Of a stretch of DNA of 64,000 nt, positions 1,623 through 55,846 are shown one piece after another. The DNA is from Phallusia mammillata. Lineage: Eukaryota. Within the stretch, counting starts at the first letter, position 1. Every line of letters begins with the position of its first letter. The notes beneath the pieces are model-generated. The model saw only the letters and a list, made by a program, of their open reading frames with translations. It ran no database searches and was not told the DNA's origin. The position numbers and the translations under genes are program-made. The stretch spans positions 27,838,001 to 27,902,000 of the forward strand of contig OZ281498.1 of assembly GCA_965637545.1 (NCBI GenBank), read 5' to 3'.

Positions 1623-2287
1623 GGCACCTGCCTCGTTGTTCTATCCCATCTAAACCGAACCCTAAGCATCTTGTGCTGTTTTTTTCACTTGTTTCCCTTT
1701 TCACAAAAAGCACATGACAATACTTTCTTATTTACCTCATTACGTCATGCCAAAACTTCAGTTGTCTGCCCGGGGAATACCCTGATGGTACATTTGTTTT
1801 GGTTTCGCTCAAAGAGATATATTTATTTTAAGTGCCTGTTATTTGTGATTTTCTTTCAATCCTTTTAAAAAGTCACCTTGACTTTGTTATTTAAGTTTAA
1901 TTAGGCCTAAAAATCAGCTAAAAAATACTCTGCTTATTTTTATTTCCCCAAAACGGATTAACCTGGTAATTCCCCTTGCAGCGGACCTTAGTTTCGCCAG
2001 TGGTAAAAAAATTTCAAAGTGGTCATTGCTGGCTTATTACTGTTGCGACCGTACAGGTGGCTTAAAGTGTGAATTTAAAGTGATTTGATATAGGTCGACA
2101 TGTTTACACTTTACTAGTGTAATTTTAGAACGTGATCTAAGTGGAAAAATACTGTTGCAATTTTGCAGAAGGAGAGTGTGAATTTAAAGTGCTTTGATGT
2201 AGATTAATATGTTTACAGATGTAAGTTGGAATCTGATCCAAGTAGCGAAATACTGTTGTGTAGATTGTAAACATTTAAAGAAGGGAA
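1623..2287. promoter_or_regulatory. Putative bidirectional promoter between divergent start codons of A and B
   Basis: 665 bp between divergent ATGs; kappaB-like GGGGAATACCC (1772-1782) and GGTAATTCCCC (1965-1975), each one mismatch from GGGRNWYYCC; CRE-like TTACGTCA (1740-1747). TSS not determined. Confidence 0.55.
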
Positions 2288-5200
2288 ATGTCTTCTCCAG
2301 AAGAGCAAGTTGCACTGATTAATGTAATAAAGAATGAACTGTGCAACAAAATTGCACCCCATCATTGTTTGACAATTGCTCAGTCACTAAAAAATAATGG
2401 AAAAATTTCAGAGGGTTTGTGTTTTTGTTTTGAGATTTTTTAACTTCTTTTTATGTTGTATTTTGGTTCGATTATGGCTATTATTAGGATTTGTTGCTTT
2501 GTTTGTTACATTGAAGTTTATGTGAACAATACATCATACAATTTGTTCTTCATCTTAAACACATATAGAATATAACTACAATATTAGGGTAAAGCATGAA
2601 AACCTTGACATTTCAATCAAATGCAAATTAGATCTGGTGAAAATGTAAAATGATAATTTAGTTGAAAACAAGTACTGGCCACAGATTTTAACAACTTTGT
2701 AAATTTGTTGCATAAGCTTTCTTTATTAACTTTTACTTTTAGAGGAGTGCAATAAAGTCATCCAGCTACCAAGAACAGATAAAACGAAAAGTATGATTGA
2801 ATTCATGTTGAAAAGAAAGGCACCTGGGTTCTTTTTAACATTTTTAACTTCTCTTCAAGAAGGTAGGTTAACTTTTTGTAAATGTTTCAGAAATTCTACA
2901 CTTTATTAGATTTTCATTGATACACGTTTTTAGTTTTTCAACTTTTGTGAGACCAAGAATTTATGTTTATTTAGAGCTGAAGGTTACAAATTCCCTGCTA
3001 TGCACTTGGGGCATAGTTATTTTTTTAAGAAACTAGAAACTGCTTGGTATTGTAAATAATACATGCTTTTTGTTCAACAAAGATTTTTTCAAAACAGATC
3101 TCTTAATTTTGGTTGTTTCCTGTTTCATCTTTTTGTCTTTGTAGCTGGGCTCTCACATGTTCGGGATGAAATAGAAGGTAAATTAAAACCTCCTACTGAA
3201 CTTCAGGAAACACACAAACATATGATGGAAATATATTTCCCAAAAGTCATCACCAAACTTAAAGCTCGTGATGTTTTAGATAATTTTCCAGACATATTAG
3301 ATGAACACACAAAGTAAGTGTTGATAGCTCTGGATGTGAATATTTTGTATTTTGTTGCAAATGTGTTATTTTAGACAGATGGTTTGTAATGTAGTTGAGG
3401 GAATAAGCCAAAATGCCATGTTTCTGCATTATGTGCTGAAAAATCCAAACTCAATTGAAGTATTGCTGCAAGCTTTAAGAAGTGGCCAATGTGGTTCATT
3501 TACTTTCCTCGTTGATTTGCTCGAAGGAAAAGGTGTTTATTTTTCAAAACAGATTTACTTTTTGTAAGAACCATTAAAATGGGAAAATTTGTATTTGCAG
3601 AAAAGTTTAGTGAATCTGACAGTGAAGTAAACATGAAAGTTTTGGAAAAAATCTGCACACATTCAAATAGGATTTTGGTGAAATTGGACCCGTTGCATTT
3701 ACGCAACCACTTTACATTGGAGAAATCTCACTGGTAGTTTTATTTGTTAATTGTAGGTAGGAGAATATTAATGATGTAATTGCAAATTATTTTTTTGGCA
3801 GGGATGCAATTAAGCGGGAAGAAAATCGATGTAAAAGAGCAATTATGTTTCTCAACATTCTTGCCAACAGCGAGACACCTTGGTTTAAACGACTGTTACT
3901 TGCTTTAACTGCTTGTAAAGAACGTGATTATAGTGAATTGTGTTCAAAGTTGGAAGAAGAATCAGGTAAAAATGAATTAACAGGATAAAATTGATACCAT
4001 TGAAAAGCAACTTTTTAATGAATTTGTAATTTTTTTGCTAGAAGATGTTGGAAGTGAAGCAACACACAGTGGTGACGTAAGTTTTGTAAAGTGTCAAAAT
4101 TTCTTTTATAATTGAAAGTTTTGTAGCATAATTATGTTGACCACTAAACTTTTGTTGTGGTTTTGATATTCCTTGTTTAAATCAGCAATTTTGATTTAGG
4201 TTGCTATGGAAACAGACGTGTGGGAGGTAAAACGTTTTTTTTTTGTGTTTTGATATGCTTGAAGCTAATTGGTTGAGTTTAGGTTGGTATGGAAACGGAC
4301 GAAACAGTTGTGAGAGGAGACGGGATTAATGATGTCAATGAAATCCCGTTTGTTAATGTTGCGGACAGAGGTAGGTTATTTATGTGGCTGTATATAATGT
4401 TTTGCACAGCTCAATTCACACTTACTTGTAAGTATGAAGTTTCTTTGATACATATGTTTGATCAAAAGTTGCACAAATTCTTCTGGGAAATAACTTCCAT
4501 CTGTTTCACAAGCCTTTTCTTCTAAAGAGTTTTCTTTTTAAAGTTTAAACTTTGCAGCAAAAAGATAAATCGAAGCAAAAAATAGTAGTTTGCGGCTTTA
4601 AATTAAATTTATTTGGTACACACAAGCTTGAATTAAAGTTTGAGCAATTTCATGCACATCCACATTTTGTCACCAAGCTACCGTATGGGGCAGTAACTGC
4701 GCTTTATACAAAACAAATATTGACATACTATCGTAATACTCAATCTAGCAAAATATATTTATTTGAACTTTAAAGTAAAGGGATAGACATTACTTGGTAA
4801 CAAACAAGATTAAATTCAAGTTCTAATGTTGCTATGCACACCCATATTTCCGTCAGGCTAATATTTTATGTACACATGGATGTGCTTTCACTATTGTAAT
4901 GGCTAACGTTCACATCATTGTTTTGTGTTTGGTTTGCACCAACGCAGTAATGCACTCAAACATAATTTTTGAGTTTTTTTCTTTCAGTGGATCATGTTGG
5001 TGAAGAGAACCCCCAGTTTGAAGGAAGTTTTCTGAATAACTTTGAAAATCCACCAAATCCACCAGTGGCCCCGACACAGCAGAATCAAAGAGGTCGTTAT
5101 GTTATGTAAAAACAAAAAGCCAATAAATGATAACTATGTTGCAGACAGTGCACTCTGTTTCAACCTATAAGGTCTTATTAGTGCAGCTGGTGATGAGACA

Positions 5201-8200
5201 TTGTGACATCAAACAGAATCGGTGAGAAATGGCTTTTTACCCTGTTACTCCCAACAAACTGGAGTGCTGTTATATGGCTGCACCAGCCAATACAGCTTAT
5301 GTCTTGTCACCAGCTGCACTGATGAGACCTTATAGGTTGAAACAGAGTGCACTGTCTGCAGCTCAGTTATGTTATGGTTGAAAACACAGAGCAACTAAAA
5401 CCTTTCAATAAGATCGTAACAATTAGCATATCAAATATAAAACATAGAAATGTTGAAATAATATTTAAATGACATAACATGACATTATGAATGTTTTGTT
5501 CAAGTGGGATTGATGCTTTAGTTTTGTTTGTTTTGTTTATGTGGGATTGCAATGCTCTACATGTTTTTATAATCACAGCTCAATTTTTACATGAAGCGAC
5601 GGTTTTATTTATTAAATTGCAGAAAACGTACTTTAACCCTGTCAGTAACACTTTTGTTTTGTACGAAGCTGAAGTAAAAAATATTATTTATATAACATAA
5701 CATTACAACTATTTTGTTTATGTAAGATTGACAGATCAGCCTAACGCTTACATGTAATTTGCCTAATATGTAGTTTAACCCTGTCAGTACCACTTTTGTT
5801 TTTTGCGAAGCTGATCCTGGGAACAACGTAAGAGATAATGTGGAGAAGTTGGAGCTTCGAGATTATCAACTTGAACTTGCAGCTCCTGCTCTTGCTGGAG
5901 AAAACAGTATGATCGTCGCGCCAACAGGTTTTCCATTGTTTCAGTGATAAAAACCTCCCAATGTCAAGTTTATAGAGCTCTTCTGGCAAATGTAATTTTA
6001 TTCCAACGTTTCGACGTCCTATACATGTTCTATACAGGTCATCAACCTTCTAATGTCTCTAACTTTATTTGGTGCATTTACACAAAATATTATTCAAATA
6101 GAATCAAAAGTCAAAAAACTGGCATTGCGTAGACATAAAGTTTTTGACATGAAACAAGCAAGCTAATGTATTTGTAAAGAACCTGACATTTAGATAGCAA
6201 CTTTCGGCAGCAATAAAGTTTGTAGCTAAAATGACAGAATCACCAACGCACGTTTTTCACAGGAAGTGGCAAAACTTATGTGGCATTGAAAATATGTGCG
6301 GAGCATATAAAGTTGGAAGAACACAAAAAAACAATTTTTCTCGTTCCACGAGTTCCACTTGTCCGTCAGCAACATCAGTTGTTTAAAAGGTAGTTGTTTG
6401 TTCTTATTAAATGAAACCAAAAAACTTGTATGTTGTAAGTAGATTATAGTTTTGAAATGTTTGATGCAATTGGTTTTCTAGTTGCAGAAAAAACTTGCCT
6501 TAGATTTTGTTTTTGTTGAAAAATGCATTTTAGTTTTGGTGATTTTAATCTTTTCAGCTGTTTTTTGCATTTGTTTGTGAAAAAATTTAATTCCTGCGCA
6601 GATTTTTGGGCGACGCACCTGATTTACTGCTACAAGTCACCGGTGAAACAAACTATCGAGTTCCCATCAATATCGCTCTGAAACGTTGCAAAATAACTTT
6701 CATGACGCCACAGATATTACTGAATATGCTCAGGTAAAAAAGTGACATTTGAAGTCAGTGTTTATCATTTTTGCCAAACGTTTTTTGTCCTAAAATAAAT
6801 TATTGCTGTCAGGCATAATGTATAACTGAGTATTGCTCATGAAGGCATCTTGAATAGGACGTCGAAACGTTGATTGTTTGTAATAAAACTGCTGGATGAG
6901 CAATACTCGGTTATATTTTTTGTCCTAACCTAACTATTGGAAGTAAAGAAAACTGTGAGAAGTTTTTTTGAAATCATGAGAACACGAAAACTAATTTGAT
7001 TATATTTAGGGTTGTGAAAAATTAGTGTAGAAATAACACAAACTAAAATTTATCATGAGCAAGTCATTTTGTGCCTTAGTTCCAAAGTATAACTATTATT
7101 GTTCAAAAGACGAAACCAATTTCCTGTAATTTGTAACTTTTACTTTCCTAGAGAAAAAAACTTTACATGACATGACTTTCCAAATTTTCCAGAGAGAGAC
7201 TTGTGACAATCAGTGATTTTACTTTGCTGATTATCGATGAATGAAAAGTATTAATCTATTCATCTTAACTGATTATTGGTTAATCCGGCGATCCCCTAAA
7301 CTACGAAGAGGACATGTGCAGCTTAGCATATAAGGCAATGGTTCTTGAGATTTGACTCCTGTCCTTGGTTCTAATCCCACTACAGGCTAGATTTTGCTTG
7401 CCTATACCTTGACTGATTTAGTATCATGCCTTCAATGATTTATATATTAGTGCGTCATGATCGCAGGTCTGCATGAACGCTTCACGACAGATCCCAGTAT
7501 TGCATTTAAGTCCATCTTAAATGTTGTAAAACTCACACAACTTTCTGTTTTGCTCTGACAGAGAGGAGAGTCCAGAGTTGCTGCATGAAATAAGTTTGTT
7601 GATTTTCGATGAGTGTCATCACACCATGAAGAATCATCCCTACAACGATATCATGAGAATTTATCACAAGAAAAAAGCTGAAGGAATGCAACAAAACTTT
7701 CCCCAGGTTTTAAACTATGCTTTATTCACATTTTTAAAGCTTTTCATTAAAGATAATAATTTGTTAGTTATTATGGGTTCCCTTCCCTGAAGGGGACACA
7801 TATTGATTTTACTCGAATTTGTTTCTGTTTTTTTGCTTTTTTTTCTTGTTTATTTTTTTTCTTCCCAAAGTTTGTCCAACCCGTTTTTCCATCTAAAGTT
7901 TGATGGATTTGGATGAAATTTTCACAGATGGTAGATATAGGTATGTAGATGTGCACCCCACTTTGTTTTTGTTGATTACCCCAATATTTACCCCGCTAGC
8001 CCCCTTAAATGGGTATTTTTTTCCCAAAGTTTGTCCGACTTGTTTTGCCATCAAATGTTTGATAGATTTGGCTGAAACTTACACAGATGGTAGATGTAGG
8101 TATGTAGATATGCTTCCCACTTTGTTTTTGTTAATAACCCCAGTATTTACCCCGCTAGCCCCCTAAAATCGGTGAGTTTGTAAACAATATCGGAATTGGC

Positions 8201-11200
8201 TGAAATTTGGATTTCTTGTAGAGTATGACATTTATAGGTGTTGATTGTTGTGTTCAACCCTGTACCCCCAACATTTACCCCACAAGCCCCCAAAGTGTAA
8301 AACATGTTTGTATGATAATGGGCACCACAAACGAACTAATTCTGTGGCGCAATAGTGTTACAAGGGCAACTAGTTGTATGTTACTTGTTGTTGGGTTGCT
8401 TGGTGGACATTTTTGCACCATGGCAGTTAGGGGGTGACATCAGAGGCAAACGGTTGTGGCTCAAAACACCTCTAGTGGTCAAAATTTTAAACATTGGCTG
8501 ATTGGGCTGAAATTTTGCAGTGCTATTGATTGAGTCATTGAGGTTTTATATTTTTTTAGTTTAGTGTCACATCCCATTAGTTACCCTACTAGCCCCCTAA
8601 AATGGGTAAGTTTATTAAACAGTGTCGGAATTGGCTAAAATTTGGGTAGCATGTGGACTATGGCTATCTCTTGAAATGCACTATTTTTAACTTTACATGT
8701 GTGGGGACCCATGAGTTTCTGCCTGCAGAAACAACTAAGGTTATAGAACACTATGGCTAATATGGGACCCAATACAAAAAAGGCATGGGAAATATATTTA
8801 TGTTTTAAAATAGGTTATAGTGTAAATTTAATGACAAAATGTGCTAAGCCACCCTTTTAGTTGTTTTTTGCTATTTTTCTTTCTTTTTGCATTAAGGGTT
8901 TCCATAGCAACGAGAAATTCTACTTTGTATTCAGTTTTTTTTTCAAGAAAACTTTTTAGGCTCTTTTTAGCGAAGACATATTGACACAATTAGGTCTAAG
9001 CTTTAAAGCAGTGGTTCCCAACCGGGGTTCCGCGTAACCCTGGGGTTCCGTACAACCCTTTCAGGGGTTCCGCGAACTTTAAGGGTCGCACAGGGGTTCG
9101 CAGAGCTTATGTGTAGCAATTCAAACATGAATGATTCATAATATCATTGTTGTAAACAGCAATGCTCACTTGTACAATCTAGTTAACCTTGGTTACACCA
9201 TTGATCAATTGTGACGTAATAATCAAAGTCGTGATAATCTCTGTCTGAATTGTGAGATAAATGTACAAACAACCAATTTAAATGACATGACAATGCGTTT
9301 CAGTAAATCATTTAATTTAATTGAAGTCATGTGCTTGGGGTGTGTTACGTAAAAATGTATGTTGTTTTAATGCAGCCTACTTGAGTTACATTCATTCAAA
9401 ATGATTCTATGGGGGGTTCCTCAAAGTTTGACAAAACACCTTGGGGGTTCCGTGTCACTAAGAAGGTTGAAGAGCACTGCTTTAAAGTGACAACAATTTT
9501 AACTAATTTTTATCACTTTTTTGATTTGTATGTAAAGATGACACAACTTTGCCATGGTTTTAAAATAGCAACAAATTTTACGGACAGACTTTTTTTAAAT
9601 TGAAATATTCTGACTTTCCAGACTGTCGGCTTAACAGCATCTCCAGGTTCAGGAAAATCAAACAGCGTCGAACAAGGATGCAAACATATTTTTAAGCTTC
9701 TTGCAAATTTGGATGTTAAAATTCCACCAGTTCAAGTGAAGGAAAATCGTGATGAACTCTCGGCTTTTACTACAAATGAAGACTTCGGTAAGAACAGATT
9801 TTGTGTTGCAAAGTTTATGATTTTTGTGTTGCAAAGTTTATTTCTGAAGTCAAGTTTACATGATTGTTTTTCAGGATAAAACTGATAAATTTGTAAGGTT
9901 GTTTATGTTTAATATGTGTAATGATAATCAAATGCTATTTAAGATACCATTAAGGCATCATTTAACCATAGTTTAACTGTAATTACAGCAGTTTAATGTT
10001 GATATAAGTTCACAAATATACTTTTTACCCACAGAAACAGTTTCTGTTGACAGAAATCACCGAGATCAGTTCACCACTAGAATCCAGCATATAATGCAAA
10101 GGATTGAAAAACAAATTAAAGACAAGATTGAACAAAATGAAAATGGTAGAGAATTGTTGCAATGTTTTGATGTACATGCAATGTTTAAAGTTTGTTTTTC
10201 TAGTTTTGGAAGACTTTGATTTCAACGTCCCTGACCGGCGAGGACAACCGGTCTATGAAAATGAAGTTATTGATTTTAGAGAAAAAAGCAAATTACTTGA
10301 GGAACGTGAACTTTCGCACCATTTTCAGATTTATGCAAGCCACCTTAAAGTACGGGAAGTCAGTTTTATTTTGTGGATATATGTAGTGGTGGGATTCAGC
10401 CGGTTCACACCGGTTCTATAGAACCGTCTCACGAAATTTTATGAGATCAGCAAACCGCTTAGCATTACTGGTTACTGTCAATGGACTTTTTGTAACAGAA
10501 CCAGCTGAATAATATAACTTTTGTGACAGAACCGGCTGAATAATATAACTTTTGTGATAGAACCGGCTGAAAAAAAATTTGAATCCCACCACTGGATATA
10601 TGTTTAATATTTTCCTTTGCCAGGCTTACAATGGTGCACTTCTGATAAACGAACATGTCCGAGAATCCGATGCGATCAAATACATCGAGGAGAATTTATT
10701 TCAAACATTCCACAATGTTGAGATGAAACTCAGAGAACTCTATGACAGAAGTGGTACGACATCGTGGTTTTCAACTTCTTTCTTTACTTTATGGAATTCT
10801 TTCTATTTAATGTTAAAATCACCCACCTTGAATTTTGCATGTTTTTAGTATGTTTATATTAATAGGCGAGGAATTGTTTTATAAGGAGAGGAAAAGAAAA
10901 ACTTTTGCTTTGTGAACATATATAATTTCAACACTATCTTTGGAAACATAAATGAAAAACTTTTGCTAATACAAACTTTTCCCTTGTTTATGGCTGCTTT
11001 AAACCAATGCATGCTTCGATTTCTTGTTATGCCTTTTAAATGTTCTTTGGCTCTTGGCAGAGGTCTTGCTAGTCAAATCTGGCTATCAACTTCATTATTT
11101 TAGAAATATCAAAACTGGCCCAAAATACTCCCAGTCCACTGCTACTGAAGCTCATAGAAATCATACAGCAAAATTTCTCGTCCAATCCCAATTCTCGGTG

Positions 11201-13655
11201 TATTATCTTCGCCCAAACGAGGGACATCGCAACTTCACTGGTGACTTGTCTCCTTGAGTCACAACCGCTCATGGGATTTAATCTCAATCCTGATTATTTG
11301 ACAGGATCCGGCGCAAAAAACTCCCAGGGAGGTAAAATGCTTTGATTCAATGATTTTGTTTTAAACTCACTGTTTAAGACAAAATTGCTGTTTGATATGC
11401 TTGAAGACAGTGGTGGGATTTAAATTTTTTGTCAGCCGGTTCTATCACAAAAGTCATATTTTTCAGCCGGTTCTGTTACAAAAAGTCCATTGACTGTAAC
11501 CAGTAATGACAACCGGTTTGCTGATCTCATAAAATTTCATGAAAAGTTAACATAGAACTGGTGAGAACCGGCTGAATCCCACCACTGGTTGAAGACCATA
11601 GATTTTTATGTTAATTGTGAAATTAAACCATAGTTTTGTCCACGCAACAAATGTTTTTACTGTAAATTGACGACTACCTAAGGACCCAAGTAAAAGTTGT
11701 GTATAGTTTTTGGGGTAAAACGGTCAACCTAAAAGGTCATATTTTGTTTAAGGTCTTACCAAGCCTCTACAAGATGACAAACTGAAAAGATTCAGAGATG
11801 GGAAAAGCAAAGTGATGATTGCAACTTCGATTGCTGATGAAGGGATTGATATTAAAGAATGCAATCTTGTGATCACATACAACCATTGCAGCAGTGAAAT
11901 TGCACAAGTGCAAAGAAAAGGTGCTAATACATGGTAGTTTTGTTTGATACAACAAGTTGTTTGTATACACCTGTACTGTTCGTTTGTAAGGAACTTGTCA
12001 CTGAGCGACACAAAAACAGAACAGCATGCAAAATAAACGGTTGCATGTTACTTTCTTTATTATTAAACTTGGACACTAAAACATAAATTGAGTGATTGAT
12101 TGATTGATCACAATTTGTGCTGTATTCACAAACAACACCAACAAGCATACTATATTGACAAAACAATCCAATACCTCTCACTAACTCAAGTAACTGACAA
12201 GTTGCATAAAGTTGAATTCCCTAAACATGTTGTTGTGGATTGAACCAGTTTTCCAATCAGTGCTTGGCCTGAACGGGATTAAAAACTAACATTATTGCTG
12301 ACATTTTTATTGTCTTCCATCCCCAGGGCGTGGTCGAGCTAAGCAGAGCAAAATGTTCATTCTCGCTTATAGTGATCATCACTATATTGAACGAGAGCGT
12401 CTGAACAGGGACAGAAATGAACTGACTCGTCTAACCCTTGAATATCTCCAAACTATGGATCGTACAAAAATCCTGTCAGAGGTATGAAGCAGGAATAAAT
12501 TGTTGAATAAATTGACTCAAAAAATAAAACAAGCTTTATAACTTTAGGGTTTCAATGATTTAACTTGTATTTATAATTTAACAGATTGAGAAAATCCAGA
12601 AGAATTCAAAGGTTGATATTCCCACCACTAGTGGACTGCAGAGATCTGATGAAATTTGGAAATTTTCATGCAGTTTGTGTGGAAAAGAAGTGACAACATC
12701 AGATCAGTTCTGTAAAGTGAAAGAGGTGACGCCCTAAATTCTTTTGTTTCAAGCAGACTAAATTATGCTATGTTTAAGCCGTCAAGTTGATCAAATGATT
12801 GCAACCTCCTTGTGATCACAAGGTTCTATCCTATCTTGGTCACTTGTGTTTTCCTGAGCAAAAAACTTAAAAAAAGCGACATTGCTCCAACCCAGTGAAA
12901 CTTTTGGGTTAAACTAAATTAATATCAACTGTTTAAGTCAAAACAAAACCAACTAAAAATCTTTTAACGGACTTGCAATAACAGGCAGTTGAAGGCGGAC
13001 TCAATATAAGCATTAAGGTGTTGAATGACCAAGAATAAAAATCAAACAAACAAATTTGTGTGGCACTTTTCACTGTTGGGCTCCTTCTGTAAAAGTTTTC
13101 GATGCAAGAATTGACAGTGTCTCTTACATTTTTTGCACAAGAAAACACAGGAAGCAGTTTGACCAAGTAATATAAATGTAACGCCATAAAGCAGAACACT
13201 ATTGCTGTAGTTTTGTTATGATATTTTATGTTTCACTATATATTTTTAGCATTATGTGTGTGTGGATAAGGAGTTGCCATCTAAAGCATTCAGGGGACCT
13301 TTAAAGACTATAATAAAGTCATCAGAGGAACATGGGAATGGGAAATTACTGTGCGGCAAAATAACCTGCAGGTTGGTCGCCATTTGTAAGTAGAAAAGTC
13401 AAAATGTAGAAATCAGTTTGTTGCATTCACAGACAAGAGTGGGGATCGCAAATGATCTACAAAAATCATCTGATTTATGCTTTGGTGATTAGAAACTTTG
13501 TCCTGAGTAATGGCAAAGTGACAAAGGTGGCAAAGAAGTGGAAAGATGCTCCATTCCAAGTGGAAACATCTTACGATGACCTCATCAACTCGCAGGGGTT
13601 GGATGTTGAGTTGGATGAAGACACAGATGAAGATATCTATGAGTTTGAGTTTTAA
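2288..13655 (+). CDS. DDX58-like: RLR gene B: 3xCARD - linker - DExH helicase - Zn-binding CTD (chimeric, see findings)
   Basis: ATG 2288; CARD exons 2288-2414, 2743-2862, 3145-3313, 3375-3532, 3601-3733, 3802-3965. Helicase motifs across later exons: [40 protein letters not shown] (exon from 7562), GLTASPG, RCIIFAQTR, TSIADEGIDI, QRKGRGR. CTD CSLC...CGKITC and KKWKDAPF; stop at 13655. Splice phases join without frameshift. Confidence 0.94.
5140..5360. mobile_element. MITE-like foldback element, ~65-bp terminal inverted repeats (paralogous copy ~27013-27232)
   Basis: TGCAGACAGTGCACTCTGTTTCAACCTATAAGG... versus ...CCTTATAGGTTGAAACAGAGTGCACTGTCTGCA; no TSD identified. Confidence 0.65.
6801..6915 (+). 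mobile_element. Degenerate copy of the hammerhead element (paralog ~28706-28815; others ~5963-6050, ~15063-15142, ~31781-31850)
   Basis: TATTGCTGTCAGGCATAAT end, CATGAAGGC...AGGACGTCGAAACGT core remnant, flanking inverted repeat GAGTATTGCTCAT/ATGAGCAATACTC. Confidence 0.6.
7193..7244 (+). pseudogene. Truncated D-type DECH exon remnant in an intron of gene B
   Basis: Intact acceptor TTTTCCAG at 7185-7192, reads [16 protein letters not shown] then TGA (7242-7244); the homologous D exon reads [19 protein letters not shown]. Confidence 0.85.
7790..8745. repeat. Unclassified interspersed repeat with internal tandem duplication (possibly Helitron-like)
   Basis: Repeated blocks (ACAGATGGTAGAT.TAGGTATGTAGAT, CCCCGCTAGCCCCC, GGAATTGGCT.AAATTTGG); 3' hairpin GTTTCTG-CCTG-CAGAAAC followed by AACTAA. 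Class is a guess. Confidence 0.4.
9009..9479. mobile_element. Non-autonomous hAT (Charlie-like) element
   Basis: Ends CAGTGGTTCCCAACC...GGTTGAAGAGCACTG; perfect 8-bp TSD CTTTAAAG (9001-9008, 9480-9487). Confidence 0.85.
10384..10594 (+). mobile_element. hAT-type MITE, CAGTGGTGGGATTC family
   Basis: TIR (T)AGTGGTGGGATTC...GAATCCCACCACTG; 8-bp TSD GATATATG on both sides. Confidence 0.88.
11408..11587 (-). mobile_element. hAT-type MITE, CAGTGGTGGGATTC family (reverse orientation)
   Basis: Same TIRs; TSD CTTGAAGA / GTTGAAGA (7 of 8). Confidence 0.85.
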
Positions 13656-14731: not shown

Positions 14732-17700
14732 TTAAGATTCAGCTTCATCAGAACTGTGATCGTACAAATAATCATCGAACGATTTTTCCACTTTTGAAGG
14801 AGCAAGACACCATTTCTTTGGCAATTCCCTTTTTTCACCCTTCTCAAAAATAAAGTTCTTGGCTGAAACTATTTGATGTTTTCTTTCTTTGTAAATAATT
14901 TCCCTCCCCCATGGACGCCTGTGAAAATAAAACTGTTAAAAGTTGTATTTAGCTCTCTCAAGCAACTATGGATATTTGTACAAAGGTAAAAAGAACTTTA
15001 AAAAAAAATTAAACGTTACATGTAGATGCTAAAATTTACAGTACGATGAAGTAACCTACCTAATGTTTGTAGAGCTCTTCAGGCAAATTTTACTTTTGTT
15101 AGTAGAGCTCAACAAACTTGATATCATGCCTGGCAGCAATAACTTTTTTATGTAACCTACATTAGTTCTTTATTTAAAATCACCAGAAGTTAAGTACACA
15201 AAGTATTTTTGAGAAAACCTGACCTACAATACAATGAAGTGACCTATGTAGGTACTGCTGTACAGCATTCAGTAAGTAATACTTTATTAATATAATAATA
15301 ATCAGCAGAGGTTTAAGGTTAATATGGTAGTAAAACTTACAAAACAATGAAGTAACCTACAGTAGTGTTCAGAAAGACTTTGAAAATAACAACCTTAAAA
15401 ATTATATTTAGGTTTCTCAAGCAATTGTAAATATTTGTACAAAAGTAAAAGCAACTGAATAGAAAATAAAACTCAATTGTTTTGTTTTTTAAACTTACAG
15501 TACAATGAAGTAACCTACAGTAGTCAGTAAGAAAGACTTAACAATTGTAATAACAACCAGCAGAAGTTTGAAGTACTATTGAGTAAAACCTAACCTGCAT
15601 ACTGGCTTCTTGCATTTGACATCACCAACTGCTCGAAGGTCGTCGAACATTTCCACTTCATCGTAAGGAATTACTTCAAACTTTCCATGGAACTCATCAT
15701 CCACAACAACATGATGCTGACAACAATGCAAAGGTTAGTGTGTGATTGCAATAATCATAACACAGTTTGTCATACAAGTCATAAATGATTATGTTTGTTA
15801 TAACATGCTTTTTAATGAAGCTTTTTACCCACAAGAAAGGTGAACCTTTGTTAAAACTAATATAGCAATTTCTACTGTATCAATCTCCCAGCCAAACACC
15901 TACATATGTTAGTATTTAGTTTAATAGTTTGTTTCTGGTCATTGCTGAAGTTAGTCGCTGGCTAAAGAAGGTTAGCTCAATGCTAAATTAGTGAAATGCA
16001 TAAATTGTTGAGTTTGTTTTGTTTAGTGCAAAAACATAGAGGCACAATAGCACTGAAACAATCACCAAACCAGAATTAGCTGCATCATGTTGTAATGTTG
16101 TCAAACACAAAACAGTGAAGGACACTACTGGTGGATAAGAACTAAATGCGCTGCAGCTGTATCATAATATAAAGCGATACACAATTAAATTCTGAGAAAT
16201 TGACGTTGATGAATTGAGGTGCGGTAAATTCATACTCAATGTTAAACCACATTTACTGTGACAGCATAAGTAAATAAAGTCACGTTTATTCAACTTACTG
16301 CATCTTTGATCTTCCAAATGTGTTCAGAGCTTGTAACATATTCACCACATTTCTTGCACAAAAGAATCCACACTCCACCAACATGTTGTCGGGTAACTGT
16401 CGAAAGTTTCAATGCTTCCTCACTTTGAAGTTTTCTCACCTTCACACATTCACACAAACATTATTACTACTGTGAACTCGGGTTTAACTGAATTCAGTTA
16501 ATCCAGTTCTTCGCCTAGTTCGGATAAACTTGAGGTACAAATGATTTGTAATGTGGTAATGCTTTAACAAATCAACATCGGTTAATCCGGATCTTCGCCA
16601 AATCCGGACATTTTTTGGGGTCCAAACAGGTCCAGATTAACCAAGGTTTACTCTATTTTAAGCTCAAAGCAGCAGTTACTTGTTTCATAAATGGCAAATA
16701 AATACCCATAGTGGTTTGCAATAAGTTAAGATGCAACAGACTTTGTGCACTAAATATGTGGTATGTACAATCATTGTTTTTTCAAGCTCAAACCAAAAGT
16801 TACCTGTTTCATGAAGTTTTCTTTGTCTTCATGTTTAAATATTTCCAAACTCTGCTTCACAAGTTCCTGTCTCTTTTTGTTAAGTTTATGATCTGTGAGA
16901 AACTTTGAATCTTCGTAACAGAGCACAACCATCTGACTGTCGCGAGCTCGGCCACGTCCTGATAGTAAACACACAAACTTATTCTGTGGATTTGAAATTA
17001 ACGTTCAAACAAGATACATGTATTTATCTGCAGCCATAATTACATGTTTTACAAGTTTATCAATGATTTAAATTTCAACTTTTATTTATTGATAAACTCA
17101 GCCCATTAAACTTGTTCGATTAGTATATGAGTGTGACATAATTTGTTTTCTACATAAACGCTTCAGGGCTGATCGCAGTAACAGACACTGGGTTATATTT
17201 GTTGATCAAATGGTCAAACCAGTGATCCCCCTAATACAAAGCTGACATGTGCAGCATACGAGGCAGGCAATGGTGCTTGTGGTTTGACTTTCGGCAAGCT
17301 TTAGTTTTTAGTTTGTGTAGCTCAGTAGTTAGACCAAAAAGGCTCCTGTCATTGATCGAATCCCACCAGGGGCTAGATTTTTCTCACTTATGCCTTGTGA
17401 ATCGCCTGGTACAGGCTAGAATTGTGTTTTGGGTAATGAAATGCTCAGACAACACATTACCTTTGCGTTGAACCTCGGTGATTTCATTAGTTGCGTGATT
17501 GTAAGTAACGACAAGATTGCAAGCTTTAATGTCAATCCCCTCATCGGCAATGGTTGTGGATGCAATCACTTTGCTGTCACCTTTTCTAAATGAGCTCAGA
17601 CATGAGTCCTGCTGGTTCTTTGTCAAACCTAACAACAAATAGGATTTACATGTGCATGATCCAGTATCTCTGAGACCTAATAACTTGGCTTGTTTTCATA

Positions 17701-20700
17701 GACTTTAAAAGACTCGTGAATATACATCAACTACAAATTGACTGGAGTATGTCACAAACATAACAGCCACATAATGCTTGTAGTAATGGTTTAGCTGTAG
17801 CACGTTTACCATCCACCAATTGCGACCTCAACGTTGTGATACTTAATAATGCCCTTTTGTAAATGTCCTTTAAAATTAAATGTATTTTGTACTAATATGC
17901 TTTGTTTCAAAAGGCCAAATCAACTTAACAAACTTTGTGAAGAACCAACATCATTAGCAGAGACTATATTTTAAACTACTTATGTGCAATTCATTTGACA
18001 CATGTGGCAGGAGAGATAGATAAACTTGTTGTTTACCTCCTTCAAGCTTTGAAACTCCTGACCCAGTGAGATAAGTTGCATTCAAGTTGAACCTGTTCAG
18101 TTGTGGAGCTTGGTTGAGACAGTTTGCCAAGTGCATTGCAATCGCACGAGTCTTAACAAACACAATGCAGCGTGAATCTGGCTTCATCATAAAATGATGA
18201 TGCAACAATCGAGTCAGCTCAATAAGTAATGGAGAGCCTTGCGTTGTGACATCACAATTGTGGATTTCTAGTTTTTAAAACAAAAGTATTTAGCTATTTT
18301 AAACAAAGCATATTTTTGATGCAGATTGGAAACAATAAGAGTATTTACAGGTAACAAAGTGTGCAATTTATATAGGAATTCTGGGTTAAAACAAGGCCAT
18401 TCAAACCATACAGTGTTTTGCCTTTTTTTCTTACCACTGTTGTTGTAAAGCTCCTTTAAAGATTTTGTTGTCAGGTTTTCCGAACAGTCTTTGTTCATTT
18501 CCTCATCAATAAAATCGACTGCATTACTTGGTCGCAAATGGTCATTGACCAATAAAGCATCGTTGTACATCTAACAATAAAAGAAATTTTTCAAGGCTGT
18601 AATTTGACCTGAATTGTACACTTGTCCGTTTAATAACCTTTAAACAACTGTCTAAAATAATTTTATTGCAAGAAAAATGTTATTTCACAGTTTGCTTGTA
18701 GTCCTGGTATAATAAAAGATCTGGTGACAATGATGTTAAAGAGGTTGGAATAAAGCAAAACATGTAGATTTATGAATGACTCCTGGTCAACTACTATGGT
18801 CTTATTTAACACACACCACTGGTTTTTATACAAGTCGATGGATTAACCTAAACATGTACTTTACCCGCAAATGGTCAGTCCGAAGTGTAAGTTCCATTCT
18901 CAGCATCTTTGCATGTTTTATTTTGAGCAAAACCTCTTTTCCAAATCCTACAATACTTCCCTCATATGCCTGACTCCCATAAGCTGCATTTATTTTGTAT
19001 TGCAAACCATTTGTGCCTAAAAAAAGTGGTTCAAAAGTAAAAAATCACAATAACATGGTTGAAAATGCCAAACAGTTTCAGTACATACAGTTTTCATTCT
19101 TTTCCAGTTTGTCCTTAATTTGACCTTCAATCTCCATCATAAGTTTAATCAGAATTGCTGCGAATTTGTCTTTTGGATTTCTTTTTACTGGAACAGTCTC
19201 TGTGAATTTACAAATGCAGTTTTACACATACTTGCACTTATCATGACAAAGGGCATTGTTAAAACAATTGTAATTAGAATGTAATCATTATAGTTTTGTT
19301 TTTGATCAAGCTACTTTGTAAATTCCTACCAAAACTTCCTTCTGAAACATATTGAGCGAGTTCTTCTGTGTTTTCTGTAACTGTTACAGGTGGAATGACA
19401 ACATCAAGATAAGAGAGAAGCGTTTGAATGTGACGACAAGCTTCAGACGTCCCACGAGCATTGCCTGAACCGGGAGTCGCAGTCAGTCCGACAATCTAAA
19501 CACAAAGTATAGAAAAATCGACCACATTCGTGAGTAATAACAATTTAACAAATCTAGAAAGGTAGGAGATTCAGTTTGAAATAATGATATTTATGTCAAC
19601 CTGTAATGCCAAGTAAGTGTAATGACATAACAGACCAAAGGAATCAGGGTGGTGACCGACAGATCTGTCTTTACTTATCAAATATACAAAGTACTCAAGA
19701 TGAGGGGGTGTTGTTTACTAGAGTGTTTTGTCCTCTGACCAAATAATTATTGTGGTCTCTGGTCCTACTGTACAGAAAATTCTGGCCAATAACAACATCA
19801 ATGTGACATTTCTTGTAATTAACCAGGCAATTTTCCTAACAAATGACAGACTGTAGTTTGGAATCCTGTGTGCAATGAAACATAATGTGCAATAAACTGG
19901 AATTTCTGTACAACAAAATATTTGTACAGAAAAATATAACAAAATATATTTTGTACAACAAAATATTTGCTCAAAAATTAAATTTACGCCAATTTACTTG
20001 TGGAACTTGACTTCCTTTCCGTTTCTGATCAAAATATATTTCCATGATTGCCCTGTAAGGGTGGTTTTTCATTGTGTTGTGGCATTCATCAAAAAACAAT
20101 AGAGAAATCTTTTCTAGCTGAAAATCTTTAGATCTGAACATAAAAAAACGGATAAATGACGATGCCAACAGTAATTCTTGAAACATTGTGACGCTATATA
20201 CACAAATATGGACTTGCATTTTCCGTGTATTGTGTTCCCAAAAACAACAATGTATTGTGTTTCCCAACGCAGAGAAAGTTTGGTAAAAACTGACCCAAGT
20301 ATTGCAGGTAGAATTCACCTTAAAATGTTCTTCAATACATCATGTGTCATAATCACAACTTTGTTTTCTTTCATTACTTCGGCCACAGGAGTTTTAGCAA
20401 GCTTTTCACCCCACAAACTATCTATTGTGACATCAGCCAATTTAAGATTTCTATGCAAAAAAATGTTATGGATTGCCGAACACATACGAAAACAAACAAA
20501 ATAATGGAAGCTTACTTTTTGAACACATTGAACTGTTGAGTAACTAATGGAACTTTGTGCACCAAAAAAACAACTTTAGCGTCGCTGTTTTTGCTGATGT
20601 GTTCCCGACAGATTCGAACAGCTACAAATGTCTTTCCAGTTCCTTACAATAACAAAAAAATATGTTTGTTGTTCACAAAGCAAAAAAAAACTTGTAGCAG

Positions 20701-23501
20701 TTAGATAGTTAGCCATCCACTTAAAAACAAAAAACTTTTAGACAAATAAACCATTGTTGGAACATAATTATTCCATTGCCTGAAAACAGCAATTTAAACA
20801 TTAAAACAAACTTATTTATTGATGTTTTATGTTTTTGTCACTCTGTACCTGTTTATCATACGTATACATACGTATATTGGTATATGATATGTATAATATA
20901 TATGATACGTATACATATGATATATATTATGCACTTTTTATGGTTAGTTGTTGTAGATTTGTTTGATAAAATTTCACCTTTTTTACCCTTTACCTGTTTC
21001 TGACACAATCACACAGTTGTTTCCTTCCACAGCAGGTTTGGCCAATTCAACTTGAAACTTTAAATCTTTCATCTCAGCGGTTTCAATAATTTCATTATCT
21101 TCATTGCTAAGATTGTTAGGCTCATTTAAATCCTTATCAGCCTCAAGAATGTTCAATTCAATGTTTTCTGTTGATTGTGATTAAGTATAGATTAACTTAA
21201 ACATTTCAAAAAACAAAGTAAATAACTTTTTTAAGTCAAAGGTAACTAGATCTGGGAACATTATCAATGAAAACAAACTATATTGTCTCAAACTATATTG
21301 TCTCAAACTATATTTTTCATTGTTTTGATCCTTACCCTCCATGTTGGGAGCTGGATGTTTCTCGCCTTCTGTCACAGCCTCACTCTCTTCAGTTACAACT
21401 GTAAGTTTTTAAAAAACAATTATTTAAATGTAAAAAAACAAAAAAAAGCAATTTAAATGTTGCTTGTTTCAAATCAACATGCAAAAGTAAAACAAAAACT
21501 TCATGGCAATACAAATCACATAGTCAAATATTCCCTTTTCCCAAACTGATCTTAGGACAATATCAGATAAAACTGCTTTACTTAAAAATATTTTTTTATG
21601 TTGCAACCCTTACTGTCCATGTTTGGAGCTGGACCCTTACCATCCATGTTTGGAGCTGGACCCTTACCATCCATGTTTGGAGCTGGACCCTTACCGTCCA
21701 TGTTTGGAGCTGGACCCTTAACATCCATGTTGGGAGCTGGACCATGCTCATTTTCGGTCACAACTTCACTTTCTTCAATTTCAACTGTAAATAAAAAAAC
21801 ACTAAAAATTAATGCTGACTGTTTAAAATAAACATACTAATGTCAAATAGAAAATTTTTGGAGATGGTAACGAATCACATTGTCAAAAAATCAATTTCTG
21901 AACTATAGCTTATTGTTAAATTTTGGATTAACACAAGAAGAAGTTTAGTGTTGCTATTGGCCAGAATTTTCTGTATTTATTTTCTACAATCTTGCCTTCG
22001 GAAGAATCCATGCTTTCTAGCAATCCAACAACACTGCAATAATCAGTTTGGCAGTCTGTTTGTTTCAATGCAGTTAAAAGTTTTTTGTGCCATTCGCTGT
22101 CACATGCAAATATCTTAAACAACAGGTCTACCCTCTCCTCTCTGCTTGATAATGCTCTTATTGAATTCCTGTAAAACAAATTCCATTTTTGTGTTATACT
22201 GCACAAGACTTTTGCAACAAATAAAACTTTACTTTTTTTCATCGTCAATTTCCAAAAAATCCACCACATCGTTTGGCTCCAGACTTTCAACAATTTTCAG
22301 AAGGTTGTACGAATTTTTATTGCACAAAATAGTTTCATCCTCCATAATTCCTTTTTTTAATAGTTCTAAACAATAATTATGTTTTGGTACACAATTCACA
22401 GTTCTAAATATTCTTAGCAAAAAGACACAAGCCAGTATTTAAGTGTAAAAAATCACAACTTTTTGACAGTTTTTATCGGATTTCATCTGACGATGACAAA
22501 TGAAACTGTTAACACATTGTGATGGTTTACTAGGCTTGTATTGTTTGCTAACAATGATATATATATAATTGATATTTATTCTTGTTTGTTTAGTTTACCA
22601 GAAGTCACCAATCCTACCATTTCCCTCCAGGAAGTCCATAATTTGTTCAGATTCATCTTTTAGTGCTTCTATGAAAAGTGGGATGGATTTTTCCCGTTTA
22701 ACAACCAATTGCAACAAGCGGGATGCCTGTCCGATATCCGTCTTTCTGGACAGAACTTCTTGTCTACAAAAAACAAACTTACAGTAAAATTGCCAGCAAA
22801 AAATATAAGAAAACATGGAAGTATTTTCTACCTGGAAATATCATCCAAAATATCAGGAAAGTGCAACAAAATATCTTTAGCTTTGATTTTTCTAACAATT
22901 ACACAACAATAGACCTCTATTCTGTATTTTAATTCAGCAATATGTTGATTTGTTGAAATGTTTGATCCTTCCACATAAGCCTTTACTTCTGACAAACCTA
23001 AATGGTGCAATGTTGGTAAATTGAAAACAGAAAATAATTTATGCAGCAGATAAGTTTTCATTACCCTCAGGAATTGAATTTAAAAATGATCGAAAAAATC
23101 CTGTCTTCAAATGCTTCAACAAAGAACAGATGATTAAATCAACTTTATTGTTGTCTTCACATCTTATTATTGTATCATAATCACCTAAAATAAAATAGAA
23201 AATTATCAAGCATGAAATCATGTTTTTTTAGAATGCTTTAAACTATTTTAAAATTGGTTGTAAATGCAATGAACAATTTTATACATTATTTTGCAGACAA
23301 ATAACCAGCAGTTATAATTGCAGAGTGGATTGCTGTTCCTGAGATCAACGTGCAAAACGAAAACTTACTTTCTTCAATGACTCCATCCTGCTTCAAACGG
23401 TGAGCAATTCCTTCACAATAATGTGGCTCAATATGGGAAATCAAATAAGGTTTGAAATTTAGCAATGTTTGTTTCTCGTTGTTTCGCCGTTCATCGTCCA
23501 T
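14732..23501 (-). CDS. DDX58-like: RLR gene C: 3xCARD - repeat linker - DExH helicase - Zn-binding CTD
   Basis: ATG 23501; CARD exons 23501-23369, 23184-23065, 22997-22832, 22763-22618, 22365-22233, 22168-21996. Motifs FQVELA, SETGTGKT, HKVPLVTQQ, LLFFDECHN, GLTATPG, RCIVFVKTR, TTIADEGIDI, QRKGRGR. CTD CKKC...CKKPVC and KKWCLAP; TAA at 14734-14732. Confidence 0.94.
16470..16653. mobile_element. Tc1/mariner (pogo/Tigger-like) MITE
   Basis: TA|CTGTGAACTCGGGTTTAA...TTAACCAAGGTTTACTC|TA; related copy at 41379-41512. Confidence 0.65.
17240..17420 (+). mobile_element. tRNA-derived SINE-like repeat (related degenerate copy ~7290-7410)
   Basis: A-box-like TAGCTCAGTAG and B-box-like GATCGAATCCC, then CAGGGGCTAGATTTT; no complete cloverleaf. 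Confidence 0.45.
21614..21745 (-). repeat. Coding minisatellite in the gene C linker: 27-bp unit (GPAPNMDGK), 4 full copies plus 1 partial
   Basis: CTGGACCCTTACCATCCATGTTTGGAG repeats inside exon 21784-21614. Confidence 0.9.
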
Positions 23502-24166
23502 GGCACCTGCCTCGTTGTTCTATCCCATCTAAACCGAACCCTAAGCATCTTGTGCTGTTTTTTTCACTTGTTTCCCTTTTCACAAAAAGCACGTGACAAT
23601 ACTTTCTTATTTACCTCATTACGTCATGCCAAAACTTCAGTTGTCTGCCCGGGGAATACCCTGATGGTACATTTGTTTTGGTTTCGCTCAAAGAGATATA
23701 TTTATTTTAAGTGCCTGTTATTTGTGATTTTCTTTCAATCCTTTTAAAAAGTCACCTTGACTTTGTTATTTAAGTTTAATTAGGCCTAAAAATCAGCTAA
23801 AAAATACTCTGCTTATTTTTATTTCCCCAAAACGGATTAACCTGGTAATTCCCCTTGCAGCGGACCTTAGTTTCGCCAGTGGTAAAAAAATTTCAAAGTG
23901 ATCATTGCTGGCTTATTACTGTTGCGACCATACAGGTGGCTTAAAGTGTGAATTTAAAGTGATTTGATATAGGTCGACATGTTTACACTTTACTAGTGCA
24001 ATTTTAGAACGTGATCTAAGTGGAAAAATACTGTTGCAATTTTGCAGAAGGAGAGTGTGAATTTAAAGTGCTTTGATGTAGATTAATATGTTTACAGATG
24101 TAAGTTGGAATCTGATCCAAGTAGCGAAATACTGTTGTGTAGATTGTAAACATTTAAAGAAGGGAA
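23502..24166. promoter_or_regulatory. Putative bidirectional promoter between divergent start codons of C and D
   Basis: Near-identical copy of 1623-2287 with the same motifs. Confidence 0.55.
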
Positions 24167-54713: not shown

Positions 54714-55846
54714 AGAAAATATTCGAGAACTTTTGTATTTTTCTGAATTGTTTTTGCATCTGTTTCAAAAACTTTTTTCTTCGCTACCTCTTTTTGGATG
54801 TTGTACCTTACACAAACATTTCACAATGCCTGTTTTGACGTAACAAATAAACCATTCATGACTAACAGTAGAGGAGGGCGGATGTCCGCTTCAAACGTCT
54901 TTGGCGTCTATTTCCGGTTAAGTTAGATTATGATGAAACAAACAAACAAACAGGTCTTGTTCTGTTTTTGTATCTGCTTCACATAAACAGGTTAGGCAGG
55001 AAAAGACAGATAACAAAGTATTTTGATTGGTGTGTCAGGTTTTGTAGAAAATTTTAAGTTGTCAACTGACTATTATGCATTTTGCCAGATATTATATGTA
55101 AAACTGTATGTTGTACTGGCTTGGGAGACACGATATAGAAGCATTTAAGATGGAAAATCTAAAATCAAGTAAGTGTTGGCATTTAAATACCGTTTACTGT
55201 AAGGAATGATTGATCGCTACAAGTGTGTATAAACCTCAGCATCAAACCATAATCTGACTCAAGTATAATAATTTTGTCATAATTTGAAAGGTTAGGCAAC
55301 AAAACATTTGGTGGTTTCTAAAGGTTTGATTAACTTCAGTTTTACCAGTTTTAAACAAATGATTGCCTTGAAAGCTTGAAACGTGTCAGAAAAACAAACA
55401 AACAAATGCTTCTGGCGTGTAATCAGGCTTCAGGCGCGTTTAGCTGACAGTTTTTCAACATGTTGGCTTTATCTACGGGCAGTGTAAATGAGGAATAAGT
55501 TTGTTTGTTGTTTGCCAGTTTGCCGTTATGTTTTTATATCATTCTGTCCAGCCGCTTTCTTTTATATCACATTTAGGAAAATTCGTATAAATTAGAACGT
55601 TTTTTATTCTTAGCTGATCTATTGACTTTTGACGGGTTTGGTTTGTATAAAATAAACTATTGCTAGATTATAACAATGTGTCAAACTGAATGATTTTTTT
55701 GAACTTTTTTACCCGTTGTTTATGTCCCGTTCAGCAAAGGTTTTTAAAGATTGGCAGCAACGTTTATTAAACAGAAGCAAAGTACAAAATGATGTCATAT
55801 TAATAGAAAACAGAAGTTTATAAATAACTGCGCAATACAAGAAAAA

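Follow-up and report, generated by a model that had tools for sequence, protein, structure and literature searches.

RIG-I-like receptor genes with a triple CARD array in the ascidian Phallusia mammillata

A 64,000-nucleotide stretch of the Phallusia mammillata genome (contig OZ281498.1, positions 27,838,001 to 27,902,000 of the forward strand; hereafter the window, with positions counted from its first letter) contains four predicted RIG-I-like receptor (RLR) genes, designated A to D, whose N-terminal regions encode three tandem CARDs. The three-CARD reading is well supported: the sequence evidence comes from Pfam, from profile-profile comparison and from searches of the PDB with profiles, and the structural evidence from an AlphaFold2 model of the middle module. 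As a whole, the best explanation, which we regard as likely, is that these genes are expressed RLRs with a CARD1-CARD2a-CARD2b array generated by exon-pair duplication, in which the third CARD adds a layer to the signalling seed. The finding is a variant within a known receptor family and not a new kind of system.

The CARD region of gene B is encoded by six exons with GT..AG borders throughout, which sum to 871 nucleotides and 290 amino acids and contain no stop codon. Residues 1-290 of the P. mammillata database protein CAB3237940.1 / A0A6F9DBL7 (1079 amino acids; hereafter P0001) are identical to the spliced model. The exons encode three modules (M1, M2 and M3) as follows.

Exon 1, 2288-2414, plus strand: start codon and first half of CARD1 (M1), ending in phase 1; open reading frame, GT donor, RNA joint 2413>2742 in 4 runs, corresponding to P0001 residues 1-42.
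Exon 2, 2743-2862, plus strand: CARD1 helices through helix 5; AG/GT borders, RNA joints on both sides.
Exon 3, 3145-3313, plus strand: final CARD1 helix, short linker and opening half of M2 (CARD2a), ending in phase 2 in codon K139; splice borders, RNA joints.
Exon 4, 3375-3532, plus strand: second half of M2 (CARD2a), ending in phase 1; RNA joints.
Exon 5, 3601-3733, plus strand: acidic/Ser-rich linker and first half of M3 (CARD2b), ending in phase 2 in codon W236; splice borders, RNA joints.
Exon 6, 3802-3965, plus strand: second half of M3, ending in phase 1; RNA joints.

Expression was examined using Logan contigs from four runs of three studies, placed on positions 2200-8100; the records of these runs carry no RNA label, and their contigs are free of introns. 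Spliced contigs reproduced all five introns of the CARD region exactly at the predicted GT..AG sites, and a single 1883-nucleotide contig joins exons 1-6 to eight more exons, up to position 6730. No exon-skipping joints across the CARD exons of gene B were seen in these contigs. The three-CARD B gene is confirmed as real and expressed.

A first-pass annotation, made from the letters alone, had described six 5' exons encoding three modules, each split by one intron, in all four genes. The exons and modules were recovered in A, B, C and D (290 amino acids each, with identical intron phases 1,1,2,1,2,1), but M1 is cut by two introns (at residues 42.3 and 82.3), and the exon-to-module register is offset, exon 3 encoding the last helix of M1 together with the first half of M2. 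The start, the end and the motifs that had been quoted for gene B at 2288-3965 are all present in the six-exon model, whose exons are joined in the contigs. The designation of all four as RLR genes holds for B, C and D, which contain exons for the helicase and the RIG-I C-terminal domain, whereas A shows CARD exons only; it exits the window at the left edge after these exons, and its helicase body lies beyond the window.

The modules are about 95 amino acids each, and the Pfam CARD_2 model comprises 93 positions with a cut-off of 28.2 bits. Residues 1-300 of P0001 matched this model in three stretches with 48.4 bits in total, and the Pfam CARD model scored 27.6 bits on M2. Individually, M1, M2 and M3 matched CARD_2 nearly end to end at residues 5-95, 103-181 and 208-281 (E-values of 1.5e-3, 8e-4 and 1e-4, respectively). 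A Pfam scan of single exons gave just two weak half-domain matches, namely exon 4 to positions 47-82 of the 85 in CARD (E 0.015) and exon 6 to positions 55-88 of the 93 in CARD_2 (E 0.009). Hidden Markov models (HMMs) of the RIG-I CARDs found three CARD matches in each of A, C and D.

PDB sequences were searched using profiles built from tunicate sequences only, and the best natural matches for the profile of each module are CARDs: RIG-I CARD1 for M1 (E 1.2e-4); the BCL10 CARD (3e-4) and MDA5 CARD2 (2e-3), together with Apaf-1 and CARD8, for M2; and the RIG-I tandem CARDs for M3 (E 6e-5), with the MAVS CARD matched more weakly (E 0.077). In hhalign comparisons with alignments of 43 vertebrate RIG-I CARD1 and CARD2 sequences, every module matched CARD1 or CARD2 with a probability of 90-97%. 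M1 aligned to CARD1 with 97.4% (E 1e-11), M2 to CARD2 with 95.1%, and M3 to CARD1 and CARD2 with 94.4 and 92.7%, respectively, the control comparison of CARD1 with CARD2 giving 98.4%. Among the three inter-module pairs, M2 and M3 ranked first (88.5%). Pairwise BLAST between the modules was not significant, and their relatedness is visible only by profile-profile comparison.

When two-CARD RLRs were mixed into the three-CARD alignment using MAFFT, the front of their CARD2 aligned to M2 and the back to M3; M2 was therefore modelled alone. AlphaFold2 was given 34 aligned rows of M2/M3 sequences from tunicates and CARD2 sequences from RLRs (A7), and the model, covering residues 96-192, has six helices, a predicted local distance difference test score (pLDDT) of 83.5 and a predicted template modelling score of 0.74. 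Its first helix is kinked as in CARDs, being split at 4-17 and 19-25, and is followed by five helices. In a Foldseek search of the PDB, the best 50 matches were CARDs or designs modelled on the Apaf-1 CARD, including mouse RIG-I, Apaf-1, RIG-I CARD2 and MDA5 (template modelling scores of about 0.75, with E-values that are weak for small helical domains). Exhaustive VIA-align comparison with 48,161 chains placed MDA5 CARD2 first (Z 12.5, 93 residues, root-mean-square deviation 2.6 Å) and gave RIG-I CARD1 a Z of 12.2; the best 36 rows were CARDs or a CARD-like design, whereas death domains and DEDs reached at most 7.1. The model thus lends support to a six-helix CARD fold for the middle module. 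A single-sequence AlphaFold2 model of residues 1-300 was of low confidence (pLDDT 44; six helices in M1 and five in M3) and was not used for fold claims. Another alignment (A6), assembled from fragments of the exons of genes A, C and D, mismatched halves of different CARDs and was not used for structure prediction.

Downstream of the CARDs, P0001 contains DEAD/ResIII at 389-558 (DEAD at 393-558, E 1.4e-24), RIG-I_C (Hel2i, PF18119) at 605-718 (E 1.7e-15, 57.6 bits against a cut-off of 23.2), Helicase_C at 752-869 (E 1.1e-15) and RIG-I_C-RD (PF11648) at 943-1051 (E 5.4e-19), all according to Pfam. In the window, the exon of B at 13410-13652 matches RIG-I_C-RD (E 4e-8), the exon of C at 14735-14935 gives E 0.002 and by itself falls below the cut-off, and matching exons of B and C give Helicase_C (at 17387-17695 in C). 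Helicase parts are encoded in exons of C and D too, as identified using Pfam and tblastn. With the helicase core, Hel2i and the C-terminal RNA-recognition domain all found, the genes are predicted to be genuine RLRs. They resemble vertebrate RIG-I (DDX58) and MDA5 (IFIH1) in having N-terminal CARDs, an acidic linker, a DExD/H helicase with Hel2i and a C-terminal RNA-binding domain; vertebrate RIG-I is 31-34% identical to the Phallusia helicase and C-terminal domain, and M1 is most like its CARD1, with M2 and M3 resembling CARD2. Unlike these receptors, the Phallusia proteins have three CARDs, with a duplicate of the second, and the third is preceded by some 12 amino acids of flexible linker. 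Among 1.84 billion representative proteins searched with a profile of exon 3, P0001 was the only relative; the A/C-type protein is therefore missing from that set.

P0001 is publicly labelled DHX58 or ASCC3 ('Activating signal cointegrator 1 complex subunit 3'), and its counterpart in Clavelina lepadiformis, P0005 (CAK8690224.1 / XP_076803945.1), is labelled DHX58-like in a record that is silent on three CARDs. DHX58 is LGP2, which is CARD-less. These names are misleading for the CARD-bearing P0001 and P0005.

The closest relatives of the helicase were found in Ciona intestinalis (P0003 and P0004) and C. lepadiformis (P0005-P0007). P0005 matched CARD_2 in three stretches with 69.7 bits in total; singly, its modules gave E-values of 2.7e-5 for M1, 4.2e-8 for M2 (33.5 bits, above the cut-off) and 2.8e-5 for M3. 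It shares the triple array and the downstream domains with the Phallusia proteins but belongs to a different ascidian order, and its CARD region is only 26-28% identical to that of Phallusia. The Ciona receptors, described elsewhere as two RIG-I homologs (Mukherjee et al., PMC3879448), are 42% identical in the helicase but have two CARDs followed by an acidic linker without CARD signal and with different intron phases; no remnant of M3 was found in Ciona using the tunicate M3 HMM and Pfam. Neither the C-terminal extension of Clavelina P0006 nor the long N-terminal region of P0008 is a CARD array. The upstream tandem neighbour of the Clavelina triple-CARD gene is another RLR gene (P0007, 711 amino acids; L001:2589-8496) annotated without CARDs; either it resembles LGP2 or the annotation lacks its 5' exons.

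The N-termini of 88 RLRs retrieved by the search were scanned with HMMs for RIG-I CARD1 and CARD2. Two CARDs were found in 72 of these, and only Phallusia A-D and P0005 of Clavelina gave three; entries with a single CARD or none make up the rest and are mostly truncated or otherwise atypical. A hemichordate, molluscs and 43 vertebrate RIG-I proteins have two CARDs. The triple array was seen neither in any of the 77 non-ascidian RLR N-termini sampled nor in the Ciona RLRs. Word-seeded searches for further triple-CARD sequences with the N-terminal 300 amino acids of P0001 and of P0005 returned only the queries themselves. The available portions of the published surveys list the RLR N-terminus types Death, one CARD, CARD-CARD, DED, IG, SAM, CASc and none, and these portions do not include CARD-CARD-CARD (Yao et al. 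2022, PMC8998645; Tassia et al. 2021, PMC8662601). A literature search, with most subscription journals outside its reach, found no published description of a three-CARD RLR. The three-CARD architecture, common to two ascidian orders, appears to be undescribed.

The gene structures provide an indication of how the third CARD arose. Intron positions in the N-terminal regions are given below as residue number plus codon fraction (.3, phase 1;.7, phase 2).

Phallusia B: 42.3, 82.3, 138.7, 191.3, 235.7, 290.3
Phallusia C: 44.3, 84.3, 139.7, 188.3, 232.7, 290.3
Clavelina: 48.3, 90.3, 145.7, 198.3, 236.7, 289.3
Ciona: 33.3, 74.3, 136.7, 198.3, then 240.0, 268.3
Argopecten: 41.3, 86.3, 203.3
Saccoglossus: 90.3, 213.3

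The Clavelina phases (1,1,2,1,2,1) are the same as those of Phallusia B and C, whereas Ciona matches only the first four, including the phase-2 intron inside CARD2. The position of the intron at the end of B exon 2 is common to Argopecten, Saccoglossus, Ciona and Clavelina, and the phase-2 intron inside CARD2 is present in the tunicates but absent from Saccoglossus and Argopecten. Judged from this table, both phase-1 introns of CARD1 are old, as is the phase-1 intron that follows CARD2, and the phase-2 intron in CARD2 is tunicate-specific. M3 repeats the pattern of M2, with an internal phase-2 intron and a phase-1 end, and the split codons K139 (M2) and W236 (M3) fall in the same column of the hhalign alignment of the two modules.

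Because the tunicate-specific phase-2 intron interrupts M2 and M3 at codons that align with each other, the simplest reading of the sequences is that the third CARD arose by tandem duplication of a frame-neutral CARD2 exon pair. In the ancestral bilaterian gene, helix 6 of CARD1 and the entire CARD2 would have resided in one exon with phase-1 introns at both sides. In tunicates, this exon would have been split by the phase-2 intron, producing a frame-neutral exon pair, and tandem duplication of the pair (CARD1 helix 6 plus CARD2) after the intron gain would have generated CARD1-CARD2a-CARD2b. The relic of CARD1 helix 6 in the downstream copy may then have shrunk to the acidic linker of about 12 amino acids at residues ~189-200. 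Which of M2 and M3 is the extra copy is not decidable from their sequences; by position and gene structure, M2 is the copy shared with Ciona, so in these terms the added unit is the third.

The array also predates both the Phallusia-Clavelina divergence and the separation of the paralog types B/D and A/C. The two genera fall in a clade of Phlebobranchia and Aplousobranchia, and the Ciona/Phallusia split is dated to ~285 million years (Myr), with the placement of Ciona uncertain (PMC5899321); on this published time-scale, the lineages with the triple array separated roughly 260-285 Myr ago, and the array is therefore old. The two-CARD state of Ciona may reflect loss of the third CARD, retention of a different paralog or, as a less favoured possibility, an earlier branching of Ciona. 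The first-pass annotation had likewise identified all three modules as CARDs and placed the array before the B/D versus A/C split, and both proposals are borne out, the same exons and phases being present in both types and in Clavelina; the middle module adopts a death fold in the AlphaFold2 model, and the triple CARD is not the norm elsewhere in the survey. Its designation of the middle module as the extra one is not retained, since M2 and M3 appear to be tandem duplicates of the CARD2 exon pair and M2 the copy shared with Ciona and the outgroups.

Within the window, the CARD-region proteins of B and D are 96.6% identical and those of A and C 97.6%, the identity between the B/D and A/C types being ~30%. 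The A/C pair is under ordinary purifying selection, the ratio of nonsynonymous to synonymous differences per site (pN/pS) being 0.29 and staying under 1 for each module. Between B and D, 12 nucleotides of the CARD exons differ (10 nonsynonymous and 2 synonymous), as do only 2 of the 807 sites in their five introns. This replacement excess (Fisher's test against introns plus synonymous sites, p = 0.028, with small counts) suggests that the B/D CARDs may have changed rapidly in amino acids following a very recent duplication or gene conversion.

M1 and M2 are spaced by 3-4 residues, M2 and M3 by the linker of about 12 amino acids, and M3 is followed by an acidic linker of ~95 amino acids leading to the helicase. 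By analogy with RIG-I and MDA5, binding of viral RNA by the helicase and C-terminal domain would release the CARD array, and the arrays of neighbouring receptors would build up a helical seed of CARDs, on which a CARD-containing adaptor nucleates. M1 and M2 would be tightly joined, like the rigid 2CARD unit of RIG-I, and M3, on its flexible linker, would most likely contribute one more CARD layer to the seed; this is the favoured role for M3.

In the auto-repressed state, CARD2 of RIG-I docks on the Hel2i insertion. The main alternative, possible though in our view unlikely, is that the CARD2 copies have divided the two jobs of their ancestor, one docking on Hel2i for auto-repression and the other entering the signalling seed, so that the third CARD serves mainly as a lid or decoy and not as a layer. 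M2 and M3 are indeed paralogs of CARD2, the Hel2i insertion (RIG-I_C) is present, M3 is flexibly tethered in contrast to the tight M1-M2 junction, and the repeated division of other RLRs' CARD2 between M2 (front) and M3 (back) by MAFFT would fit copies that seem to retain different ancestral features. However, both copies keep full-length CARD profiles and are conserved across both types of Phallusia paralog and in Clavelina, and this is compatible with both roles.

A more far-reaching reading is that the third CARD alters seed construction, either through a three-layer helical platform with a different stoichiometry or through a tethered CARD2b acting as a built-in first adaptor layer, with a non-MAVS partner or a reduced need for adaptor; we regard this as doubtful. 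To our knowledge, the ascidian lineage has no interferon. It is also quite doubtful that the three-CARD protein is only one isoform of a locus acting as a splicing switch, in which regulated skipping of frame-neutral pairs would yield two-CARD receptors. Exons 3+4 (327 nucleotides; 3145-3532) and 5+6 (297 nucleotides; 3601-3965) do have phase 1 at both ends and lengths that are multiples of 3, and contigs can conceal minor isoforms, but the contigs show consecutive joints only, one of them spans all six exons, and the sole database transcript protein, P0001, is the three-CARD form. That one module is a decaying, functionless duplicate serving as a CARD-like helical spacer is highly improbable: despite the sub-threshold Pfam scores of single Phallusia modules and the 10 nonsynonymous against 2 synonymous differences between B and D, end-to-end CARD profiles are kept in all three modules of two ~30%-identical Phallusia paralog types and of Clavelina, across lineages apart for roughly 260-285 Myr (PMC5899321), pN/pS between A and C is below 1 per module, and the model of M2 is that of a well-packed CARD.

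Several points weigh against the favoured reading of expressed receptors with a layer-adding third CARD. Individually, the Phallusia modules score 18.9, 19.8 and 22.8 bits, under the CARD_2 cut-off of 28.2. Confident structure is confined to M2, and the alignment for its model held true RLR CARD2 sequences, making it a supportive but not fully independent test, while the poor model of residues 1-300 gives no inter-domain geometry. The RNA evidence concerns gene B only, and Logan contigs lose rare isoforms; since skipping of exons 3+4 or 5+6 stays in frame, two-CARD isoforms are possible. The tunicate sampling comprises three genera, the replacement excess between B and D fits relaxed constraint as well as diversifying selection, and the working model of the array is an extrapolation from vertebrate RIG-I and MDA5.

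The window DNA is AT-rich and invertebrate, and the four genes form two head-to-head pairs, A/B and C/D, separated by ~21.9 kb. The remaining features are as follows.

Gene A, minus strand, start codon 1622: triple-CARD region 117-1622, exons 1622-1490, 1305-1186, 1118-953, 884-739, 486-354, 289-117.
Gene B, plus strand, start codon 2288: rest of the gene at 4042-13652, acidic linker mini-exons, DEAD/ResIII helicase, RIG-I_C (Hel2i), Helicase_C and RIG-I C-terminal RNA-binding domain; RNA joints up to 7559, Pfam, tblastn.
Gene C, minus strand, start codon 23501: triple-CARD region 21996-23501, exons 23501-23369, 23184-23065, 22997-22832, 22763-22618, 22365-22233, 22168-21996.
Rest of gene C, 14747-21995, minus strand: linker, helicase and RIG-I C-terminal domain exons; Pfam, tblastn.
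Gene D, plus strand, start codon 24167: triple-CARD region 24167-25846, exons 24167-24293, 24624-24743, 25026-25194, 25256-25413, 25482-25614, 25683-25846.
Intergenic stretch A/B, 1623-2287: ~665 bp between divergent start codons, with a second copy at 23502-24166 between C and D.

The two ~665-bp stretches are presumed to be shared bidirectional promoters, and exon 6 of both A and C has a predicted GC donor, as read from the sequence. A divergently oriented RLR neighbour is likewise present at the RLR locus of Argopecten irradians (L004:1-1001). Gene D (24167-35000) matches P0001, the product of B (2288-13652), with 78-97% up to about residue 500 and with only ~40-55% thereafter. In the acidic linker of gene B, both a 'METD' unit and a portion of the flanking intron are repeated at mini-exons 4200-4226 and 4283-4370, as if a mini-exon had undergone a small tandem duplication. 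A 27-nucleotide tandem repeat, in translation copies of GPAPNMDGK, occurs on the minus strand at 21585-21836, in the linker region just downstream of the CARD exons of C. Very long open frames on both strands at 55800-58600, with a low-complexity repeat (NQRMNQ... / SSGLSSG...) and a strong AT skew, are unrelated to the RLR genes.

In vertebrates, RLR signalling is explained by the 'lock-washer' geometry of tandem CARDs that templates MAVS filaments, and the dependencies of RIG-I and MDA5 on ubiquitin, TRIM25 and MAVS are known. A three-CARD receptor constitutes a natural experiment on the lock-washer model, and the invertebrates most closely related to vertebrates have conserved its triple array for about a quarter of a billion years. 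Such a receptor opens the questions of how CARD number relates to seed geometry, whether auto-repression and signalling by CARD2 are separable and which adaptor is used in tunicates. The available portions of published work describe invertebrate RLR N-termini as evolutionarily plastic, with changes tied to exon gain or loss and tandem gene arrays (PMC8998645; PMC8662601); unlike the non-canonical receptors in those portions, the Phallusia array would reflect internal duplication of the receptor's own CARD and not the graft of a foreign domain. It would thereby illustrate cleanly how a domain can be gained when a frame-neutral pair of exons is duplicated, the event being datable from a lineage-specific intron. 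Domain-based surveys would miss or miscount these receptors, as tunicate CARDs taken singly do not reach Pfam thresholds. If the third CARD does alter seed construction, tunicates, the sister group of vertebrates, would have a distinct solution to CARD-filament nucleation.

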